From: Adineta vaga
Taxonomy: Eukaryota; Animalia; Rotifera
Assembly (NCBI GenBank): GCA_021613535.1
Contig: CP075497.1
Location: 3,472,001-3,536,000, forward strand
Length of the DNA: 64,000 bases
Direction: 5' to 3'
The position numbers and the translations under genes were made by a program. The notes beneath the pieces are model-generated. The model was given only the letters and a program-made list of their open reading frames with translations. It was not told where the DNA came from and made no database searches. Shown one piece after another: positions 49,673 to 64,000 of the stretch (its first letter is position 1; each line of letters opens with the position of its first letter).

Positions 49673-52381
49673 ATGTTATATGGTATTATTCTGGATAGTA
49701 CACGTGATGCTATTATGCTTTTATATGGATTAAATGTATGGAAACGTATTGCATATGAATTACAATTACCATTTGATATGTTTGATCTCTTTACACATTA
49801 TGCTGATCAGATTATGTTGAATATAAGCGAATGTAAAACGAAAATTAATATTATCTATATCTTAGTTGTTGTTTCGATCTATAGGTTTAGTTGATATTTT
49901 ACATGAAGGAACACGTGATAAATATTTGGAAATATTTGGTCAAAATTTCGTTCGTTATTTTGCTAATTTAGGTTATGATAAACTATTTCGAGTAGCTGGA
50001 CGAACATTACGCGAGTTTCTTTTTATTATTGATCAATTACATGATTCAAATCGATTTACTTTTCCGCAAATGCAATATCCATTATTTCACGTTACCGAAG
50101 AAGACGGTACTGGTATAACATTAGAATACAAGTAAATATTGTCAATATATGAATCACTAAAGAATGATTCGAATTTTGATTGAGAATTTCATTATATTTA
50201 GAAGTATACGACATGGTTTTATTCATTATGCTATTGGAAGTTTATTAGGTGTAACAAAGAGATTTTTTAGTGAAAATGATATACGATTATATATTCGTTG
50301 TGATTTGTCTACCAGAGAATGTAAGTGAATTGAAGATGATGAGCTTCAAAAGATGTTAAAGTTTTGTTTTGAATAGATACTCATGTTGTTCTATGGATTC
50401 AATTTGACAATAAAACATATCAACCACAGAATTTACTTCGTTCTAGTATTCTACCTAATTTGACTGGTCACACATTCTTCAAAGTAAGAAACATTGAATC
50501 TATTCAAATTGATGAGTGAATTAGGTTTTATTATACCACAATATTAACTTAAATTAAATTAAATTAAGGTATTTCCATTTTCAATTCTTATGGATTCATC
50601 CATGAGAATTTGTCGAATGGGCGAACATATTAAGAAAGTATTTCCAACAGCTACCGTTCTCATCGGAAGACCATTAGATCAAGTCTTTCGACTTATTCGA
50701 CCTGATATTCATGTCGAATGGGACAAAGTATATCAACATACTTCTTTCCTTAAACACTGTTTTCTCTTCACTTCTCTCAATCGTAGATACTTTCCTATGG
50801 TCGACATATTGTCTTTCTGATGGAAAATCGATTACAATTACGTGTTGGTCCAACCGGCAAAATTCAACTCAAAGGACAAATGAAATACATAGAAAACAAG
50901 AATATGCTATGGTTTTTATGCCATCCAGTGTGAGTTTGATGATATTTCGTGGATGAAGTACAATAAATGATGATTATAGTTTAGAAAGTGCTGATGATAT
51001 GATATCAGCTGGTTTACATTTGACAGATTTGAATCTGTTTGATGGTACCAGTGAGTTATTGATAACGAGCATGCATCAATCCAGAGAAATAGCAAATTTT
51101 ATCGAGAAAGTAAGTCGAGTAGTCATTATATTACACTCAAGACTTCATTCAATACATTTCATTTATAGCAACACTTATGTCTGATACAATTGGAACAAGT
51201 GAAGAAAGAATTATTACAATCTCGTAAACAAAATCAAAATATTTTATGTGCAATAATGCCAAAACATATTGTGCGAATGATTCAATCTGGTATTCCAACA
51301 TGTAGTCTTTATGAGGTACGTCTTCTTCAATAAGATTGTATCTCTGAAGAAACGTTTTTGTTTCATTTTTCGTGACATAGTCTTATCCTCTTGTAACAAT
51401 CATGTTTGCATCTATAATGGATTTCAAAATGTCTACTGCTTATCTTAAACCAACGGAAATTATCGAAGTACTCAATGAAACAATTAGTATATTTGATACT
51501 ATTACAGATGGATTCGATGTTTTAAAAGTAAAAACGACAGTGGATGCGAGTTGTATGTTTGTTGCTGGTTTACATGATCGATCAAATGGTATGACAGATC
51601 ATTCGGGAAAGTTAACGGTAGGAAATAGATTTGAAAGACTTTTTGGAAGTTAATTAAAATATTTCTATAGTCAATATTAATACCAACGGATGAGGAAGAG
51701 GAAAATGTACAATATTCGTTTGAATTCAATCCAACAGAAACTATTGCGTATCTTTCATTGGAATTATTAAAAGCGAGTAAACATCTTATTAATCCTATGA
51801 CACGTAAACCATTTGGTATGAAAGTTGGTAAGTATGAGAGATGAAATTACATGTTCTGTTTCAAAAGGTAATATGAGTACTATTCTTTTTTTCTTGAAGG
51901 TTTTCATGCTGGTCCAGCAGTTGGAGGTGTAATAGGTGATCAAAACCTACAATATTGTTTATTCGGTGATGCGGTTACTGTCGTATGTTTGCATTAAATT
52001 GTCAATTTGTTTTCATATTTATTTCAATTTATTTTAGGCAAGAGAAATCATGACTACGGGAGAAGTAAATTGAATAGTTTGATGACATTTTTTTATTTGA
52101 AAATAATTGGGAAATTTAGATCAATCGAATACATATGAGTTATACAGCGTATCAGCATTTAGTAACAAATCATCGGTTCAATATTGATTATCGAGGACCA
52201 ACAGACGTAAAAGTAAGTGCTCATATATATTCACATCTTCTTTCCGATATTTTCTTAAACATAGGGTAGTAATACATGTGGAACCTATTGGCTTACAAGT
52301 ATAAATAATCAATTTTCTACGACTGGCATCAATAAGACTACGAAATTATTAAAATGTCCATTCAGTGGTCAACTATCGTAG
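49673..52381 (+). CDS. Soluble guanylyl cyclase-like gene 1 (H-NOX-PAS-CC-degenerate cyclase)
   Basis: MLYGII..., GRTLREFLFIIDQLHDS (proximal His), YKSIRHGFIHY, PAS motifs FPFSILMD and LKGQMKY, cyclase VTIMFAS...YCLFGD...TYWL; ends KCPFSGQLS*. Confidence 0.92.
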
Positions 52382-53340
52382 TTTGTTTATTTTTGAAATT
52401 CTATATTATCAATAAATAAATTTAATATAAAACTCGATTTTCTTGAATGTAGTTCTAGCATAATGGAAGATACAATCTGAAACAGTTATCACGCAAGATG
52501 GAAATATCGAATCACTGTCATATTTCTTTTAACAAATAGATTTTAATCATACGAGATATTGCTGGAGGCACCAAGAATTAATTATACGCCTAAAATAGTT
52601 TATACACAAGACTACTCTGACAAGTTAGATGAGAGATGTTCGTTTTTGAAATTTTTTATCTTTCATACCTGTAACTATTTAATCATCCTTCTTTCCCTTC
52701 CGTAATACCTACTGGGAAACATTTTCTAGGGAAAATCTCTGAATGAATCTCATCTTCTGTTTGATAAGATAATACATTGAGAGAAATTGCTTCAGAATCC
52801 TCGTCAAAATGAAGTTTTGTCTCTTTCTAATACATGAATAAATTATTCATGAAGTACCATGCTCTTTTAGTACGTTTTTCTATCAGTTTTCACTGAGTCT
52901 GTAATTATATAAAAGACGTTAAAACAAAAAAAAACATTTTTCTTTGTCAACTAATATTGTGTATCAACATTCTTTGACGTCTTTCTTTACAGGTTCTTTC
53001 TGTAATCTATCTTATTTCATGATGAATGTAAAGCACCTAATTACATTTTTTTTCCTTTCTTCGAACTGTTCAAAAAATAAGAAATGGCAAGTGACTTTTT
53101 ATGTGTCTGACAGAAGATGAAATATTTACTTCTTTTTCTTTCTATTTCATGTCTGAAAATATTGCATGTTTAAAAAACGTTGGAGATACTTTATTGAACA
53201 TCTATAACACTTCTTTTGATAGGATTCCGATGAAAGAAAAAGATCCGTGAGACAATTTTTAAATCTAACCGAAGATTGTATGTCTTCACCGAACTTTTAA
53301 ATTATTTCTGTTTAGTTTATTCAAGTTTGATGAACAAAAA

Positions 53341-55337
53341 ATGTTTTACGGTATCATAATGGACACAGTTCGTGATGGTGTACTTCGTTCTTATGGACCC
53401 ATGATGTGGAAACGTATTGTTACAGAAGTAAATATTCCATCGGAAACGTTTGAACTTTATGCACGATATGATGATCATATACTTATAAATATTTGTGATT
53501 GTAAGTTATTGTTTATTTTATTTTAATCGAAAAAAGAAAACGTCTTTGTCAAGGTATGATTGAAATCTTAAATGATGGTACACGTGACACGTATTTAGAG
53601 TATTTTGGTGCAAATTTTATTCATTATTTTTATCGATATGGTTTTGATAAAATTCTTCGAGTAGCTGGTCGAACATTACGTGATTTTCTTTATACTATTG
53701 ATCAATTACATGATTCGAATCGATTTACTTTTCCACAAATGCAACATCCACTATTTCATGTGGCAGAAGAAAATGAAAATGGAGTTTTACTTGATTATAA
53801 GTAGAATATACATCATTTTTCAAAGATATTTTCATGAGAATATGCATATTTTTGTTTAGAAGTGTACGTTTTGGCCTTGCATATTTTGCAATTGGTGGTC
53901 TTAAGGCTGTCGCTTCATTATTATTTAATCTGAAAGATATTAATATCATTGTACAACATAATTTATCATCAGACAGATGTAAATATTATTATGTTTTGTA
54001 TTGAAAAGCAAGTTGTTGTTTTTCCTATGTACAGATTCGCACATAGTGTTTCGCATACCATTCGATAATTATAGGTATGAAGTAAAACGATTGTTTAATC
54101 TTCCGGACCTACCTGATTTGAATGGTACAACTTTCTTTCGAGTAATTTGAGCAAGATTTATCTTGTAAGTAATGACATATGTCTCCATTGAATTCTAGGT
54201 ATTTCCATTTTCAATTCTCATGGATTCATCCTTGAGAATTTGTCGAATGGGCGAACATATTCAGAAAGTATTTCCAACAGATACTGTTCTCATCGGAAGA
54301 CCATTAGATCAAGTCTTTCGACTTATTCGACCTGATATTCATGTCGAATGGGACAAAGTATATCAACATACTTCTTTCTGTAAACAATGTTTTCTCTTCA
54401 CTTCTCTCAATCGTAGGTACTTTCCTATGGTCGACATATTGTCTTTTTGATGGAAAATCGATTACAATTACGTGTTGGTCCAACAGGCAAAATTCAACTC
54501 AAAGGACAAATGAAATACATAGAAAACAAGAATATGCTTTGGTTTTTATGTCATCCAGTGTAAGTTTGATGATATTTCGTGGATGAAGTACAATAAATGA
54601 TGATTATAGTTTAGAAAGTGCTGATGATATGATATCGATTGGTTTACATTTGACAGATTTGAATCTTTTTGACAGTACAAGTGATCTTCTTATAACTGGC
54701 ATTCATCAAGAACGAGAAATAGAATCAGCGATATTCAAAGTTTAATTTATCTTTTCTATTATTCATTCTTGTGAAATAATTTGTTACTTTCAGCAACATT
54801 TATGGACAAAAAAACTGCCAGCTGTACGACGAAAATTAAATTTCTGTCATAAAAAGAATCAGGCATTACTCTATTCAACTATGCCAAAACATATTGCTCT
54901 CCTACTTCAATCTGGCATACATGCGAATAGTATCTGTGAAGTATATCGTATGAAATTACATTTCTTTGGTTAAATCCTATTTAAATTCCTAGTGTCAACC
55001 ACTTATAACTATTCTCTTCGTATATGTTTTGGATTTAAAATCAATAACTCATCACCTTCATGCTGCAGATGCAATTATATGCTTAAACAACGTTATTATT
55101 TTATTTGATACTATAGCTGATAAATATGATGTATTTAAAGTTGAGATTAAAGCAGATGCGAGTTATATGTTAGTCGCAGGTATACATGATCAATCACATA
55201 TGCTCGAAGGAAACAACAGAATTGAAATTGTAAGAATGATTTTAACAAAGTTTTCAGGAATATATTAAATGATTTTATAGTCATCAAGGAGATTATTAAA
55301 TATAAGGGTAGAAAATAATGATGAAGAAGACAATGGC

Positions 55338-55369
<32 letters not shown>

Positions 55370-56037
55370 AGAAGAGTGTAATAAAAACCCATCTGGGCTT
55401 AATGCAACCGAAATTATCGCTGCATTATCATTAGACTTTGCACACGCTAGTGAGCGTACTTACAATCCTATATCGAATAAACCATTTCATCTAAAATTTG
55501 GTGAGCAATATATATATATATATTTTGTTTTTTTCGAATCTATCTTTCCATATAGGTTTCCATTCAGGTACGGCAATCGGTGGTATTGTTGGTACTCGAA
55601 ACTATCAATATTGTCTATTTGGTGATACCGTTGGAACAGTAAGTCTATCTTGTATATTCACTCTGACATTCAATCAATAATCTTAGGCAAGTCAAATCAC
55701 TACTACTGGCGAGGTAATTATATTAGAAAAAATAGAACGAAATTAGATATGTGAAGATTTATAGATTGGACGAATACATTTGAGTCATACAGCATACAGT
55801 CATTTGATTGAGGGAAATCGTTTTACAGTGGAATATCGAGGTCAAGTGCATATTAAAGTACGTTGATAGATATTGTTTGGTTAATTTATTGTTTATTAAG
55901 TATTTTTTTAGGGAAGAGGTGCAACTGACACATATTGGTTAACAGGTTTAAATAAAAAAATATCGACAGCAATGGTCAATTCAAATCCAACAATATTGAA
56001 ATGTCCATTTACTAATCGAAATTTAACATTTAGATGA
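53341..56037 (+). CDS. Soluble guanylyl cyclase-like gene 2
   Basis: MFYGIIMD..., DQLHDS, YKSVRFGLAYF, PAS, cyclase ITILFVY...KVEIKADASY...YCLFGDTVGTASQ; ends KCPFTNRNLTFR*. Confidence 0.92.
55338..55376 (+). repeat. Coding (GAA)n microsatellite, poly-Glu (13 E here; 8 E at 60113-60136)
   Basis: Direct count of gaa/gag codons in the two copies. Confidence 0.9.
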
Positions 56038-58098
56038 ACGACATTTAATTAATAAAAAGTATATTTTCAGTATCAAAGCATCTATTTTCAAAATGCTAAA
56101 AGTCATGACTAGATTAGATACTATATATAGATAACGTGGAATACGCAGTAAAAAAGAAATCAAAATCATCCTATGCTTCATGAGTAATAAACAACTACTT
56201 TCTAACATATACTCATTTTCTAAACTCGAAACCAGATATTATTTCTACTATCCGTAGGATAATAATATCTAATAGTACACTTCTTCAAAATAATTTTCAA
56301 TGCGACACATGAAATTAAACATCCGAATGCATGTGACATGAACACTTTAGAGACGTATATGTTCCTAGAGATTATTTACGCATCGATTGAAATTTTAACT
56401 ATACTTCCGTTTTCCTTGTTAACTAATTATAGTATTTGTGTTTTTGATTTGCACTGTTCCATAATAACCATCCGTTTGAAGTTGATTAATTGCAAACTGA
56501 GACGTAAAGATAAATTAAATACTTCGGGGTATAATTAGAGAATGTCAAAAACATGTATTTATATGGAAAAAGAAAATATTTTATTTATATTAAAAATTCT
56601 GATCATGTTTATATAAGATAAAACTTTATCTACTGTTTTATTTCGATTATATTGAACGAATTCACATATTAATCCCGTAAGTAGATATGAATCACCTTTT
56701 TCTACTATTGTGAAGAGATTTATATAGATTTCATTTTCTTTATTCATACTCTACTTTTGCTCATTAACAAAATATTGAAAGATGAGTAATATCAACTAAC
56801 ATCATTCTGAAGCAAAAATTAAGTTACAAATGAAGAGAGATGAAATATCAATGCTTAATGTAAACGTATGAATGTATAAATCATTACCTGTTCCCGAACT
56901 CTGTTATTAGATAGTACAAATTTGATGAATGATAGAATATTGATTCATTTTTCTATTTCGTTCTTTTTAATCTCTTTTTCTGATATAAATATATATATAT
57001 ATAAATATTTATTAGAATTCTATCATTATACTTTTGATTCATATCTTTCTGATTGTATCGTATTCGTTTTGCTATAGTTTTAGACATTTGATGACATCAG
57101 AGTAGTTGAAGTTTGATACTTATGGAAGGTCGAGGATAATTATTTATCCTGTCGTTTGATTTAGTTAGTCTTATGTGCATTTGTTTTGATTAGATTAATA
57201 ATGGTGTTGACACTCATTCAAATGAATGAATTAGTTGAATTGAATTGGATCAAGCGCTGACATCCGTTTTTATCTAGTATGTTTTTATTCTTTCTCTTCA
57301 TCTTTCTACTAAAACTGATTGATTCATGACAGAAATGTCACTGTTACCTCAACAGTTGTGTAATTCAACTAATGTTCACTCATGAACCTGAACAAGAAAT
57401 TTGATAGCTTATAAACAGTAGTATTTCGAATATTTTACGTAATTCAACGAACTAAAATACTATTTTTATTCATAAAAATTCATCGGTAGCAATGACTATG
57501 AACTTTTGAACTGATAAAATACATTCATATTTTAATTCATGTCTCAAAACTATTCGTTTCCGTTTGTTCAATCTTTATCATAGTATAGGTAAATCATTGT
57601 GCATGAAAAATTCTATTTGACTATAAATATAAAAAGACATTTTTTCTTGAAAAGAAGTATGCTTAAAACCCGCATATCCTTTAACAATAGCCGTGTGAAA
57701 TAAACACGTCTAAACGATAATATTTTGCTTGTCATCACACATGAAAGATTTCTTTGTATCCATCTTGATAAATCTCCTTGCATTAACTGAAATCTTTTTC
57801 GGTACTTCTTTCTTCCACCAGAATAAGAACGATTCACTACACTTAATACATTAATGAAAGATTTAAATGAGATCTTGGCATGATAGGTAATACTGCAGTG
57901 GTGTTAATGAAAGATTATGTGATTTGTACATCGGATATCCGTATGTGAAAGAAACTTCTTAGTGCGCAAAAATAAAACTGTGCGTACATTAACACTTCTT
58001 TCTTTCTTTCCTTTCTTTTTTTCTTTCTTTTTTTGGAAAGTATAAAAGAGTTTGTTACTTCGCCATTGTATTCAATTTAGTAGGTAATCTTGTACAAA

Positions 58099-60795
58099 AT
58101 GTTTTACGGTATTATATTGGAAAGTGCACGTGATGGTGTGACTCTTTTTCATGGTGAAACTGTTTGGAAACGTGTTGTTCATGAACTCAAACTACCATCT
58201 GAAACATTTACTTTATTCGCACGATATGATCAGAAAATCTTATTCGACATTTGTGATTGTAAGTCTCATCAAGCAGTGGGTCATATGATATTCATTGAAG
58301 TATCGATAATTATAGGTATGCCACATGTTTTACATGAAGGAACACCCGAATCATTTCTGGAATTCTTTGGTGAAGATTTCGTTCGTTATTTTGTCAATTT
58401 TGGTTTTGATAAAATTCTTCGAGTAGCTGGACGAACGTTACGTGATTTTCTTTTCGCTATTGACCAATTGCATGATTCAAATCGATTTACTTTTCCACAA
58501 ATGGATCAACCGTTATTTCACGTTACGGAAGAAAACGAGTCAGGTGCCACATTAGTTTACAAGTGAGTTTCTTTTTGCCTAAGCTTTTTCTTATGAACAA
58601 GAATGAAAATGATTTTTATCTATGTTCTTCGAATTTAGAAGTGTTCGTCATGGATTTGCTCGATATGCAATAGGAGGTTTGTCCGCTGCAGCTAAAACAC
58701 TCTTTCAAGAACATATCAAAATGGATATTTTGCATGATTGGTCAACGAAAGAATGTAAGTTACAAACAATAATATCACTTCATTATCAATTGATGGATAT
58801 AATGATTAGATGCTCATATTGCTTTCTGGGTAGAATTTAAAAATACAGGATTTCATCAGAAACGAATATCGCACTTTCCATCATTGCCAGAGCTTAATGG
58901 AGTAACATTCTTTCGAGTAAGAACATGATTTTTCTCTCATTTGTAAAATAATAGAATATAAATATGAATTCAGGTATTTCCTTTTTCGATTCTCATGGAT
59001 TCAACATTACGTATTCATTGTATGGGAGAAAAAATTATGGCTGTGTTTCCAGAAGAAACTCCTCTAATTGGACGACCACTTGATCAAGTCTTTCGACTTA
59101 TTCGACCTGATATTCTTATTGAATGGGACAAAGTATATCAACATACTTCTTTCTGTAAACAATGTTTTCTCTTCACTTCTCTCAATCGTAGGTACTTTCC
59201 TATGGTCGACATATTGTCTTTTTGATGGAAAATCGATTACAATTACGTGTTGGTCCAACAGGCAAAATTCAACTCAAAGGACAAATGAAATACATAGAAA
59301 ACAAGAATATGCTTTGGTTTTTATGTCATCCAGTGTAAGTTTGATGATATTTCGTGGATGAAGTACAATAAATGATGATTATAGTTTAGAAAGTGCTGAT
59401 GATATGATATCGATTGGTTTACATTTGACAGATTTGAATCTTTTTGACAGTACAAGTGATCTTCTTATAACTGGCATTCATCAAGAACGAGAAATAGAAT
59501 CAGCGATATTCAAAGTTTAATTTATCTTTTCTATTATTCATTCTTGTGAAATAATTTGTTACTTTCAGCAACATTTATGGACAAAAAAACTGCCAGCTGT
59601 ACGACGAAAATTAAATTTCTGTCATAAAAAGAATCAGGCATTACTCTATTCAACTATGCCAAAACATATTGCTCTCCTACTTCAATCTGGCATACATGCG
59701 AATAGTATCTGTGAAGTATATCGTATGAAATTACATTTCTTTGGTTAAATCCTATTTAAATTCCTAGTGTCAACCACTTATAACTATTCTCTTCGTATAT
59801 GTTTTGGATTTAAAATCAATAACTCATCACCTTCATGCTGCAGATGCAATTATATGCTTAAACAACGTTATTATTTTATTTGATACTATAGCTGATAAAT
59901 ATGATGTATTTAAAGTTGAGATTAAAGCAGATGCGAGTTATATGTTAGTCGCAGGTATACATGATCAATCACATATGCTCGAAGGAAACAACAGAATTGA
60001 AATTGTAAGAATGATTTTAACAAAGTTTTCAGGAATATATTAAATGATTTTATAGTCATCGAGGAGATTATTAAATATAAGGGTAGAAAATAATGATGAA
60101 GAAGACAATGGCGAAGAAGAAGAAGAAGAAGAAGAGTGTAATAAAAACCCATCTGGGCTTAATGCAACCGAAATTATCGCTGCATTATCATTAGACTTTG
60201 CACACGCTAGTGAGCGTACTTACAATCCTATATCGAATAAACCATTTCATCTAAAATTTGGTGAGCAATATATATATATATATTTTGTTTTTTTCGAATC
60301 TATCTTTCCATATAGGTTTCCATTCAGGTACGGCAATCGGTGGTATTGTTGGTACTCGAAACTATCAATATTGTCTATTTGGTGATACCGTTGGAACAGT
60401 AAGTCTATCTTGTATATTCACTCTGACATTCAATCAATAATCTTAGGCAAGTCAAATCACTACTACTGGCGAGGTAATTATATTAGAAAAAATAGATCGA
60501 AATTAGATATGTGAAGATTTATAGATTGGACGAATACATTTGAGTCACAGCATACAGTCATTTGATTGAGGGAAATCGTTTTACAGTGGAATATCGAGGT
60601 CAAGTGCATATTAAAGTACGTTGATAGATATTGTTTGGTTAATTTATTGTTTATTAAGTATTTTTTTAGGGAAGAGGTGCAACTGACACATATTGGTTAA
60701 CAGGTTTAAATAAAAAAATATCGACAGCAATGGTCAATTCAAATCCAACAATATTGAAATGTCCATTTACTAATCGAAATTTAACATTTAGATGA
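58099..60795 (+). CDS. Soluble guanylyl cyclase-like gene 3 (chimeric: gene-4-type 5' half, gene-2-type 3' half)
   Basis: 5' exons near-identical to 62832 onward; sequence after ~59149 near-identical to 54374-56037. Confidence 0.9.
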
Positions 60796-62831
60796 ACGAC
60801 ATTTAATTAATAAAAAGTATATTTTCAGTATCAAAGCATCTATTTTCAAAATGCTAAAAGTCATGACTAGATTAGATACTATATATAGATAACGTGGAAT
60901 ACGCAGTAAAAAAGAAATCAAAATCATCCTATGCTTCATGAGTAATAAACAACTACTTTCTAACATATACTCATTTTCTAAACTCGAAACCAGATATTAT
61001 TTCTACTATCCGTAGGATAATAATATCTAATAGTACACTTCTTCAAAATAATTTTCAATGCGACACATGAAATTAAACATCCGAATGCATGTGACATGAA
61101 CACTTTAGAGACGTATATGTTCCTAGAGATTATTTACGCATCGATTGAAATTTTAACTATACTTCCGTTTTCCTTGTTAACTAATTATAGTATTTGTGTT
61201 TTTGATTTGCACTGTTCCATAATAACCATCCGTTTGAAGTTGATTAATTGCAAACTGAGACGTAAAGATAAATTAAATACTTCGGGGTATAATTAGAGAA
61301 TGTCAAAAACATGTATTTATATGGAAAAAGAAAATATTTTATTTATATTAAAAATTCTGATCATGTTTATATAAGATAAAACTTTATCTACTGTTTTATT
61401 TCGATTATATTGAACGAATTCACATATTAATCCCGTAAGTAGATATGAATCACCTTTTTCTACTATTGTGAAGAGATTTATATAGATTTCATTTTCTTTA
61501 TTCATACTCTACTTTTGCTCATTAACAAAATATTGAAAGATGAGTAATATCAACTAACATCATTCTGAAGCAAAAACTAAGTTACAAATGAAGAGAGATG
61601 AAATATCAATGCTTAATATAAACGTGTGAATGTACAAATCATTACCTGCTCCCGAACTCTGTTATTAGATAGTACAAATTTGATGAATGATAGAATATTG
61701 ATTCATTTTTCTATTTCATTCTTTTTAATCTCTTTTTCTTATATAAATATATATTTATTAGAATTCTATCATTATACTTTTGATTCATATCTTTCTGATT
61801 GTATCGTATTCGTTTTGCTATAGTTTTAGACATTTGATGACATCAGAAGAAGTTTGATACTTATGAAAGGTCGAGGATAATTATTTATCCTGTCGTTTGA
61901 TTTAGTTAGTCTTATGTGCATTTGTTTTGATTAGATTAATAATGGTGTTGACACTCATTCAAATGAATGAATTAGTTGAATTGAATTGGATCAAGTGCTG
62001 ACATCCGTTTTTATCTAGTATGTTTTTATTCTTTCTCTTCATCTTTCTACTAAAACTGATTGATTCATGACAGAAATGTCACTGTTACCTCAACAGTTGT
62101 GTAATTCAACTAATGTTCACTCATGAACCTGAACAAGAAATTTGATAGCTTATAAACAGTAGTATTTCGAATATTTTACGTAATGCAACGAACTAAAATA
62201 CTATTTTTATTCATAAAAATTCATCGGTAGCAATGACTATGGACTTTTGAACTGATAAAATACATTCTCATTTCAATTCGTGTCTCAAAACTATTCGTTT
62301 CCGTTTGTTCAATCTTTATCATAGTATAGGTAAATCATTGTGCATGAAAAATTCTATTTGACTATAAATATAAAAAGACATTTTTTCTTGAAAAGAAGTA
62401 TGCTTAAAACCCGCATATCCTTTAACAATAGCCGTGTGAAATAAACACGTCTAAACGATAATATTTTGCTTGTCATCACACATGAAAGATTTCTTTGTAT
62501 CCATCTTGATAAATCTCCTTGCATTAACTGAAATCTTTTTCGGTACTTCTTTCTTCCACCAGAATAAGAACGATTCACTACACTTAATACATTAATGAAA
62601 GATTTAAATGAGATCTTGGCATGATAGTTAATACTGTAGTGGTGTTAATGAAAGATTATGTGATTTGTACATCGGATATCCGTATGTGAAAGAAACTTCT
62701 TAGTGCGCAAAAATAAAACTGTGCGTACATTAACACTTCTTTCTTTCTTTCCTTTCTTTCTTTTTTTGGAAAGTATAAAAGAGTTTGTTACTTGGCCATT
62801 GTATTCAATTTAGTAGGTAATCTTGTACAAA

Positions 62832-64000
62832 ATGTTTTACGGTATTATATTGGAAAGTGCACGTGATGGTGTGATTCTTTTTCATGGTGAAACTGTTTGG
62901 AAACGTATTGTTCATGAACTTAAACTACCATCTGAAACATTTACTTTATTCGCACGATATGATCAGAAAATCTTATTCGACATTTGTGATTGTAAGTCTC
63001 ATCAAGCAGTGGGTCATATGATATTCATTGAAGTATCGATAATTATAGGTATGCCACATGTTTTACATGAAGGAACACCCGAATCATTTCTGGAATTCTT
63101 TGGTGAAGATTTCGTTCGTTATTTTGTCAATTTTGGTTTTGATAAAATTCTTCGAGTAGCTGGACGAACGTTACGTGATTTTCTTTTCGCTATTGACCAA
63201 TTGCATGATTCAAATCGATTTACTTTTCCACAAATGGATCAACCGTTATTTCACGTTACGGAAGAAAACGAGTCAGGTGCCACATTAGTTTACAAGTGAG
63301 TTTCTTTTTGCCTAAGCTTTTTCTTATGAACAAGAATGAAAATGATTTTTATCTATGTTCTTCGAATTTAGAAGTGTTCGTCATGGATTTGCTCGATATG
63401 CAATAGGAGGTTTGTCCGCTGCAGCTAAAACACTCTTTCAAGAACATATCAAAATGGATATTTTGCATGATTGGTCAACGAAAGAATGTAAGTTACAAAC
63501 AATAATATCACTTCATTATCAATTGATGGATATAATGATTAGATGCTCATATTGCTTTCTGGGTAGAATTTAAAAATACAGGATTTCATCAGAAACGAAT
63601 ATCGCACTTTCCATCATTGCCAGAGCTTAATGGAGTAACATTCTTTCGAGTAAGAACATGATTTTTCTCTCATTTGTAAAATAATAGAATATAAATATGA
63701 ATTCAGGTATTTCCTTTTTCGATTCTCATGGATTCAACATTACGTATTCATTGTATGGGAGAAAAAATTATGGCTGTGTTTCCAGAAGAAACTCCTCTAA
63801 TTGGACGACCACTTGATCAAGTCTTTCGACTTATTCGACCTGATATTCTTATTGAATGGGACAAAGTATATCAACATACTTTTTTCCTTAAACGCTGTTT
63901 TCTCTTCACTTCTCTCAATCGTAGGTACTTTCCTATGGTCGACATATTGTCTTTTTGATGGAAAATCGATTACAATTACGTGTTGGTCCAACAGGAAAAA
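62832..64000 (+). CDS. Soluble guanylyl cyclase-like gene 4 (truncated by window end, within PAS)
   Basis: MFYGIILESARDG..., DQLHDS, YKSVRHGFARY, PAS start. Confidence 0.9.

Follow-up and report, generated by a model that had tools for sequence, protein, structure and literature searches.

The window analysed here is a stretch of 64,000 nucleotides from the bdelloid rotifer Adineta vaga (chromosome 6, positions 3472001-3536000 of a six-contig, 100.8-Mb assembly; GC content ~30%). From position 49673 to the window end it carries a tandem array of four co-linear, full-length genes on the + strand, each combining an H-NOX heme sensor domain, an HNOBA region and a class III cyclase domain. This is the architecture of the soluble guanylate cyclases (sGCs), the main animal receptors of nitric oxide (NO) and O2, and all members of this family described so far are, to our knowledge, thought to signal by making cyclic GMP (cGMP). 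The account that follows concerns mainly genes 1 and 2 of the array, which appear to have kept the sensor and to have lost the residues that either half of a cyclase active site demands.

The array and its heme sensors

The four genes were located by tblastn with P0002, an annotated Rotaria H-NOX/HNOBA/cyclase protein to which they are homologous along their full length, and the same search gave no further gene of this kind in the window. Introns were placed by a frame-consistent search for GT..AG pairs. Homology searches were run with single exons or with database orthologues, and the spliced models were used for local alignment, for the tree and for the ratio of nonsynonymous to synonymous substitution rates (dN/dS). 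The models of genes 1 and 2 have 13 introns each, all of them GT-AG and 48-85 nt long. Gene 4 runs past the window: its cyclase exons lie beyond the window end, the gene finishes at window-equivalent position 65528, and it encodes an intact protein of 652 amino acids. The features are collected in Table 1.

Table 1. Genes, motifs and segments of the array (window coordinates; a slash in a motif marks an intron)
Feature	Position	Strand	Description
Gene 1	49673..52381	+	14 exons, 641 amino acids, introns of 50-85 nt, no internal stop; H-NOX, HNOBA, cyclase domain predicted to be dead; gene 1-like orthogroup
Gene 1 heme motifs	DQLHDS 50031-50048; YKSIR 50127-50211	+	YKSIR split by intron 2; from the exon model
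Gene 1 exon 9 motifs	51405..51551	+	FASIMDF (Asp to Ser); KVKTTVDAS (Glu to Lys, second Asp retained)
Gene 1 LQYCLFG and DAVTV/AREI	51947..52049	+	across intron 11; beta4 Arg to Gln, Asn to Thr, Arg to Glu
Gene 2	53341..56037	+	14 exons, 665 amino acids, intact; gene 2-like orthogroup
Gene 2 exon 9 motifs	55017..55163	+	FVYVLDL (Asp to Tyr); KVEIKADAS (Glu and second Asp retained); Rotaria orthologue aligned to solved cyclases
Gene 2 YQYCLFG and DTVGT/ASQI	55603..55698	+	includes the 27-nt micro-exon 12; Arg to Gln, Asn to Gly, Arg to Gln
Gene 3	58099..60686	+	same exon layout as gene 2; apparent chimera, frameshifted
Gene 4	62832..64000	+	first six exons in the window; exon 6 continues to 64067; locus L001
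PAS-like segment of HNOBA, exons 5-6	50569..50929 (gene 1); equivalents 54199-54559, 58974-59334, 63707-64067	+	repeat families D1, D3

The domain assignments agree with one another. PF07700 (H-NOX) matches the array genes above cut-off, PF07701 (HNOBA) is found on all four, the cyclase exons match solved cyclases (NPR1 and GC-C among them, with phmmer), and orthologues combine PF07700, PF07701 and PF00211, so that the array genes appear to have the sGC architecture in full. The heme sensor seems to be in good order. As the first-pass annotation of this DNA had noted, each of the four genes has the proximal His in DQLHDS and the YxSxR motif as YKS[IV]R, split by intron 2; the gene models bear this out, and in the A. 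ricciae orthologue of gene 2 these motifs align to His105 and to Y135/S137/R139 of human sGC beta1.

Which gas is sensed? At the distal-pocket position equivalent to Ile145 of beta1, genes 1, 3 and 4 and almost all relatives have Tyr. The gene 2-like proteins, from six species, all have a fixed Phe instead, which suggests a distinct ligand for this orthogroup. The NO synthase oxygenase domain (PF02898) was not found in a six-frame search of the 100.8-Mb assembly, in which bacterial controls were positive; endogenous NO may therefore be absent from A. vaga, as it is from C. elegans, and the 11 H-NOX genes of this animal may sense O2 or external gases.

Half-sites of the cyclase domain

As for the cyclase domain, the active site of these enzymes is assembled from two monomers: monomer A gives two metal-binding Asp and the beta4 Arg, and monomer B gives the Asn, the Arg of helix alpha4 and the Lys (Winger et al. 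2008, PMC2576301). The residues of the array genes were called from alignments to solved cyclases (the NPR1 and GC-C cyclase domains, with phmmer, and others) and from family alignments. Of the first set, the second Asp is kept throughout, the first Asp is Ser in gene 1 and Tyr in genes 2, 3 and 4, and the beta4 Arg (PRYCLFG) is Gln in all. Of the second set, the Asn is Thr in gene 1 and Gly in genes 2 and 3, the Arg is Glu in gene 1 and Gln in genes 2 and 3, and the Lys is kept in genes 1 and 2, gene 3 stopping upstream of it. The guanine-recognition Glu, replaced by Lys in gene 1, is present in the other three. Gene 4, with DTVNM/ASRI and KGKG in the exons outside the window, has the Asn, the Arg and the Lys.

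Genes 1-3 thus hold neither complete half-site, being devoid of the first Asp, the beta4 Arg, the Asn and the Arg, and gene 4 presents the second one. By the known residue rules, genes 1 and 2 would be unable to supply either half of the site. Gene 4 appears to be an ordinary beta-type subunit, because its Asn and Arg are kept.

These readings span introns, and support for the splicing comes from RNA-derived contigs of four runs from four studies, aligned to positions 50038-56037 (genes 1 and 2). In gene 1, GT..AG joints were found at introns 11-13 (51982>52038, 52064>52120 and 52212>52265), each with support from one or two runs, the first of them in a contig of run X17, and further contig pieces fall on exons 7 and 9. 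In gene 2, up to four runs show such joints, which cover introns 1-3, 6-9 and 11-13 and include micro-exon 12, with 55638>55687 and 55711>55763 present in four runs; here, transcripts of the 3' half common to genes 2 and 3 may stem from either gene. All these joints coincide exactly with the modelled splice positions, so that the readings DAVTV/AREI and DTVGT/ASQI are correct. Spliced contigs arise only from RNA, and therefore genes 1 and 2 are transcribed, at levels that the contigs do not rank. Two other joints, 50727>54417 and 54559>50980, link genes 1 and 2 at the near-identical exons 5-6; they most likely reflect an ambiguity of contig assembly rather than read-through or trans-splicing.

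The substitutions that the first-pass annotation had listed (FASIMDF and DAVTV/AREI in gene 1, FVYVLDL and DTVGT/ASQI in genes 2 and 3, and [LY]QYCLFG) are therefore real, and correct splicing does not bring back the Asp, the Asn or the Arg of genes 1 and 2. It had also taken three of the cyclase domains as open and correctly spliced, which holds for genes 1 and 2 with their RNA joints and fails for gene 3 with its 2-bp deletion and stop. Nor can all four genes be regarded as pseudo-cyclases, as proposed there, given the Asn and Arg of gene 4 and the recent, frameshifted origin of gene 3.

Which of these changes are peculiar to the array? Six-frame Pfam searches gave 11 H-NOX/HNOBA genes in the A. 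vaga genome, seven of them outside the array: five of beta type (L002, L003, L005, L007 and L008) and two of alpha type (L004 and L006), which lie on chromosome 2 at ~9.168-9.172 Mb and on chromosome 5 at ~9.548-9.551 Mb. Intron positions differ in these seven genes, which were compared by aligned exon segments, their models being incomplete. The five beta-type genes have F-x-Y-x-x-D-F and QYCLFG as in the array, yet they keep DTxNT/ASR. Overall, DTxN[TM]ASR is kept in six other H-NOX genes of A. vaga, and the Asn and Arg are missing only in the gene 1-like and gene 2-like proteins. L002 and L003 form a near-identical tandem pair of beta-type H-NOX cyclases (chromosome 3, 3965637-3970000 and 3976451-3981000), whose position resembles that of the array on chromosome 6.

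All nine beta-type (Gyc-89D-like) paralogues of A. vaga are without the first Asp, have an Asp three residues further on and have Gln for the Arg of PRYCLFG; relatives from Lingula, Branchiostoma, Acropora and Seison also have the Gln and no first Asp, with Asn and Arg kept. Because these traits are common to paralogues and relatives that retain Asn and Arg, they are the normal, ancestral state of the beta-type (C2-like, Gyc-89D-like) subunit and not a sign of decay. The changes specific to the dead genes are the loss of the Asn and Arg only, plus that of the Glu in gene 1. It follows that two of the changes initially read as degeneration, at the first Asp and at the PRYCLFG Arg, exist as described but are family-wide traits. 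The suggestion that the new Asp three residues on marks a rewired metal site is weakened in the same way: the residue is shared with the Asn/Arg-retaining paralogues and is replaced by Gly in one of the three Rotaria orthologues of gene 2, and as a feature specific to the dead genes it was rejected. For annotation this is a caution, since a "missing Asp" in the Gyc-89D-like clade is the normal beta-type state and no evidence of a dead enzyme.

The two alpha-type genes present the other side of the coin. Their FSDVVGF, KVETIGD and PRYCLFGDTVTTANK motifs contain the two Asp and the beta4 Arg, and where beta-type subunits have Asn and Arg they have Thr and Lys, as in mammalian alpha1; they are thus the likely partners of the beta-type subunits. 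Heme-binding motifs are retained in the bdelloid subunits of both types. The nearest named relatives of the array are all 88E-, 89Db- or gcy-31-like, and the canonical beta1 proteins are only 26-29% identical. This places the array, as judged by sequence, in the atypical sGC clade (Gyc-88E/89D, GCY-31 to GCY-37, beta3-like) and not with the NO-sensitive alpha1/beta1 enzymes, and its genes encode paralogous beta-type subunits of this Gyc-88E/89D-like family.

Age, constraint and recombination

Are genes 1 and 2 merely on their way out? Pseudogenisation after tandem duplication is the simplest explanation for degenerate motifs, and the array does contain a frameshifted, very recent duplicate (gene 3), in a clade that evolves faster than the other paralogues. 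The age and the state of genes 1 and 2 tell a different story. With P0002 as query, 26 more proteins of bdelloids were recovered, and three orthogroups among them correspond to the array. The gene 1-like orthogroup (A. vaga, A. steineri and A. ricciae) has KVKT and D[AS]VT[VI]AR[EQ]; the gene 2-like orthogroup (three Adineta and three Rotaria species) has KVEI and DTV[GSKR][IT]ASQ, with the Lys gone too in Rotaria; the gene 4-like orthogroup (three Adineta species) has DT[VI]NMASR. Both dead orthogroups conserve their own replacements, with ASQ throughout the gene 2-like and VT[VI]AR[EQ] throughout the gene 1-like proteins, and every bdelloid member outside the three array orthogroups keeps DTxNTASR (motif table).

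The tree, from which gene 3, L003, three near-identical Rotaria proteins and the metagenomic P0099 were left out, has the form (g4,(g1,(g2,Rotaria))), with support of 100/93/99. This topology points to the Asn and Arg having been lost once, in a lineage already separate from gene 4 and older than the divergence of Adineta and Rotaria. Synteny was also compared. In A. ricciae the locus holds a three-gene array, g1-g2-g4, followed by Sec1, and in Rotaria sp. a gene 2-like gene alone is followed by Sec1. The flanks are alike in both Adineta species: a TM2 gene (45.6-46.2 kb of the window) precedes the array, and Sec1 comes directly after gene 4. Farther afield, two H-NOX cyclases have the Asn and Arg positions replaced, P0055 of Seison nebaliae (VEETK) and the metagenomic P0099 (VIAASQ). 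These replacements are independent, and the second half-site therefore appears to have been lost more than once.

Selection was estimated with the NG86 method between A. vaga and A. ricciae, with bootstrap 95% intervals for the cyclase core. For the whole gene and for the core, respectively, dN/dS is 0.17 and 0.26 (0.16-0.38) in gene 1, 0.14 and 0.19 (0.11-0.32) in gene 2, and 0.10 and 0.17 (0.09-0.28) in gene 4; gene 2 against Rotaria gives 0.28 overall and 0.21 for the core, all these values being rough because dS is 0.5-1.5 and partly saturated. Despite this roughness, neutral evolution is excluded for genes 1 and 2, and the dead cores are about as constrained as that of gene 4. The first-pass annotation had named two observations that would speak for decaying pseudogenes, a neutral dN/dS on the cyclase exons and a lack of expression, and neither applies to genes 1 and 2: the upper bounds for their cores do not exceed 0.38, and spliced RNA is present.

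Genes 1 and 2 have intact, 14-exon reading frames that are spliced and expressed, their orthologues in five other species are intact, and dN/dS is 0.14-0.28, the upper bootstrap limits staying far below 1. For these two genes decay is thereby refuted, and as an explanation of the degenerate motifs it is very improbable. It is likely only for gene 3. Up to ~59100 this gene is 98-100% identical to gene 4, and thereafter it is ~100% identical to gene 2, whole downstream spacer included (sliding identity); diagnostic sites place the switch within 59121-59148, in exon 5, with gene 2-like sequence from 59149. In the assembly sequence, exon 13 has lost 2 bp relative to gene 2, between 60546 and 60547, and a stop follows at 60567-60569, after 601 amino acids. 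Gene 3 can thus be read as a very recent chimera with a gene 4 5' half and a gene 2 3' half, a pattern that unequal crossover between genes 2 and 4 would yield, and it is probably dying. With 3' halves ~100% identical from 59149 on, genes 2 and 3 cannot be counted as independent. Between these otherwise identical genes, the poly-Glu run of exon 10 (55301-55380 against 60076-60140) differs by 15 nt; the inserted loop that carries the run is the fastest-evolving part of the cyclase domain.

Another intriguing feature is the behaviour of exons 5-6, which encode the PAS-like segment. Here, paralogues within a species are 84-97% identical and orthologues 79-83%, and in every other segment the reverse is found. 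Two species, A. vaga and A. ricciae, therefore homogenise this segment independently by gene conversion, which is limited to exons 5-6 (the four window copies; L012). The switch of gene 3 lies in the same segment. A 28.7-kb contig of A. ricciae also encodes two mixed proteins that switch after exon 6, P0181 with a gene 1-like N-half and a gene 2-like C-half, and P0186 with a gene 4-like N-half and a gene 1-like C-half; they may be real recombinants or assembly artefacts.

Sensor subunits without a working cyclase?

What, then, do genes 1 and 2 do? They represent two old, bdelloid-wide orthogroups, in which the H-NOX domain is kept intact, together with the region for dimerisation (PAS and coiled coil), and the cyclase fold is still under constraint. 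The reading that we favour, and consider somewhat probable, is that they are pseudoenzyme sensor subunits, which form silent heterodimers and so titrate or gate a shared alpha-type partner. The proposed mechanism would run as follows. In this family a single active site is shared in each productive dimer, the beta-type subunit giving the Asn, Arg and Lys, and the alpha-type subunit giving both Asp and the Arg. Genes 1 and 2 would dimerise as their active relatives do, with alpha-type (or active beta-type) subunits, and the resulting dimers would be catalytically silent. With the alpha-type partner titrated or gated in this manner, a gas signal, or the level of the dead subunit, would lower the cGMP output. 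In two species gene conversion keeps the PAS-like segment alike in dead and live members, which is in line with a dimerisation specificity common to both. To this extent, the earlier idea of a maintained family of heme sensors, whose own residues would not allow them to make cGMP, stands for genes 1 and 2, by their residues, RNA, orthogroups and selection, and it does not extend to genes 3 and 4.

Several points weigh against this picture, beyond the saturated dS already mentioned. The putative partner is assigned from residue complementarity alone. In all domains, evolution is faster across the whole array clade than in the other beta-type genes, and since gene 4 with its Asn and Arg takes part in this, the acceleration is not a mark of the dead state. 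The homogenisation of exons 5-6 could be the product of a neutral recombination hotspot. Finally, Asn and Arg mutants of class III cyclases are strongly impaired and not always wholly dead, as known from adenylyl cyclase mutagenesis, so that weak activity with an alpha-type partner may be conceivable, and gene 1-like proteins conserve an Arg one residue before the canonical position.

This last point leads to another explanation: genes 1 and 2 would form, with the alpha-type partner, a slow or differently specific cyclase in which other residues replace the Asn and Arg. Candidates for this role are the displaced Arg of the gene 1-like proteins and the Lys or Arg found at the Asn position in Rotaria orthologues of gene 2. 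The cyclase cores are as constrained as that of gene 4; they retain the second Asp and the Cys, and in Adineta the Lys as well; AR[EQ] is conserved in the gene 1-like proteins, where Lys stands for the guanine-recognition Glu, as in the C2 domains of adenylyl cyclases. Such an enzyme is nonetheless quite unlikely. In the gene 2-like proteins the Asn position varies freely (G, S, K, R) and the Arg is uniformly Gln, the Lys is also lost in the Rotaria orthologues, and an Arg moved by one helix position points elsewhere. Besides, we know of no class III cyclase that works without the Asn/Arg pair.

Alternatively, the dead cyclase domain may have become a protein-interaction or nucleotide-binding module, through which the state of the H-NOX domain is passed to targets other than sGCs. 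There is a parallel in bacteria, whose H-NOX proteins signal via partner proteins and not via an enzyme domain of their own. Purifying selection on all domains and the conservation of the substituted motifs agree with such an output, as does the fixed Tyr-to-Phe change in the distal pocket of the gene 2-like orthogroup, with the distinct ligand that it suggests. Still, the complete sGC dimerisation architecture is kept, and a PAS-like segment like that of the active gene 4 points to dimers of sGC type; with no known candidate target, this possibility is an unlikely one, if less so than a weak enzyme.

The silent-heterodimer reading can also be carried one step further, into a picture that is possible but rather doubtful. 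Genes 1 and 2 would belong to a modular gas-sensing system of bdelloid rotifers, as gas-tuned, dead-cyclase inhibitors with at least two types of sensor (a distal Tyr in gene 1-like and a distal Phe in gene 2-like proteins), in competition with the active beta-type subunits for a single alpha-type partner. Through its homogenisation, the PAS-like segment would keep the members of the array partner-compatible, and it would at the same time be a recombination point that recurrently puts sensors onto live or dead outputs, as in gene 3 and in the two A. ricciae chimeras.

If silent sensor subunits exist, they would constitute a natural pseudoenzyme within the sGC family, that is, a conserved and expressed branch in which the sensor and the dimer scaffold are kept and both half-sites are lost. 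They would also make it possible to ask whether gas sensors can subtract from cGMP output, through built-in dominant negatives, and not only add to it. Since the assembly of A. vaga gave no NO synthase domain and holds nine beta-type against only two alpha-type genes, control could act mainly through the competition of subunits for the alpha-type partner.

How does all of this compare with the systems already described? The closest are Gyc-89Da and Gyc-89Db of Drosophila, whose partner is Gyc-88E. They fall in the same clade (by nearest relatives and by the tree) and have the same H-NOX/HNOBA/cyclase architecture as the array; the Gyc-89D type has the distal-pocket Tyr in most members and, like the array, is without the metal-binding Asp and depends on a partner that supplies it. 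The first Asp is missing as well in crab 89Db-like, Lingula and Branchiostoma relatives. The difference is that the Gyc-89D type and the six other beta-type genes of A. vaga complete a heterodimeric site via the Asn and Arg, whereas genes 1-3 do not.

The same split, with two Asp and an Arg on one side and Asn, Arg and Lys on the other, is found in mammalian sGC alpha1/beta1 and in the C1/C2 domains of adenylyl cyclases. Indeed, the best solved match to the C-terminal half of the Rotaria orthologue is the C2 domain of AC8, in which the PRYCLFG Arg is likewise Gln. Unlike the mammalian pair, bdelloid alpha-type and beta-type subunits both have heme motifs, and the dead subunits have no mammalian counterpart. 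Receptor-type cyclases that are each without one half-site allow the same reasoning from residue complement to dimer type; genes 1 and 2 of the array would be without both.

Our literature search found no account of rotifer sGCs, of sGC pseudoenzymes or of H-NOX cyclases without both half-sites. Complementary half-sites and silent heterodimers are already established, and what is apparently new are dedicated H-NOX cyclases that are devoid of both half-sites. The precedent for silence within the sGC family is MsGC-beta3, which, according to the title of reference 44 in PMC1435932, forms inactive heterodimers with other sGC subunits. The silence of these dimers is reportedly a side effect of mixing otherwise active subunits (MsGC-beta3 with NO-sensitive ones), whereas in the array it would be hard-wired in dedicated, conserved genes.

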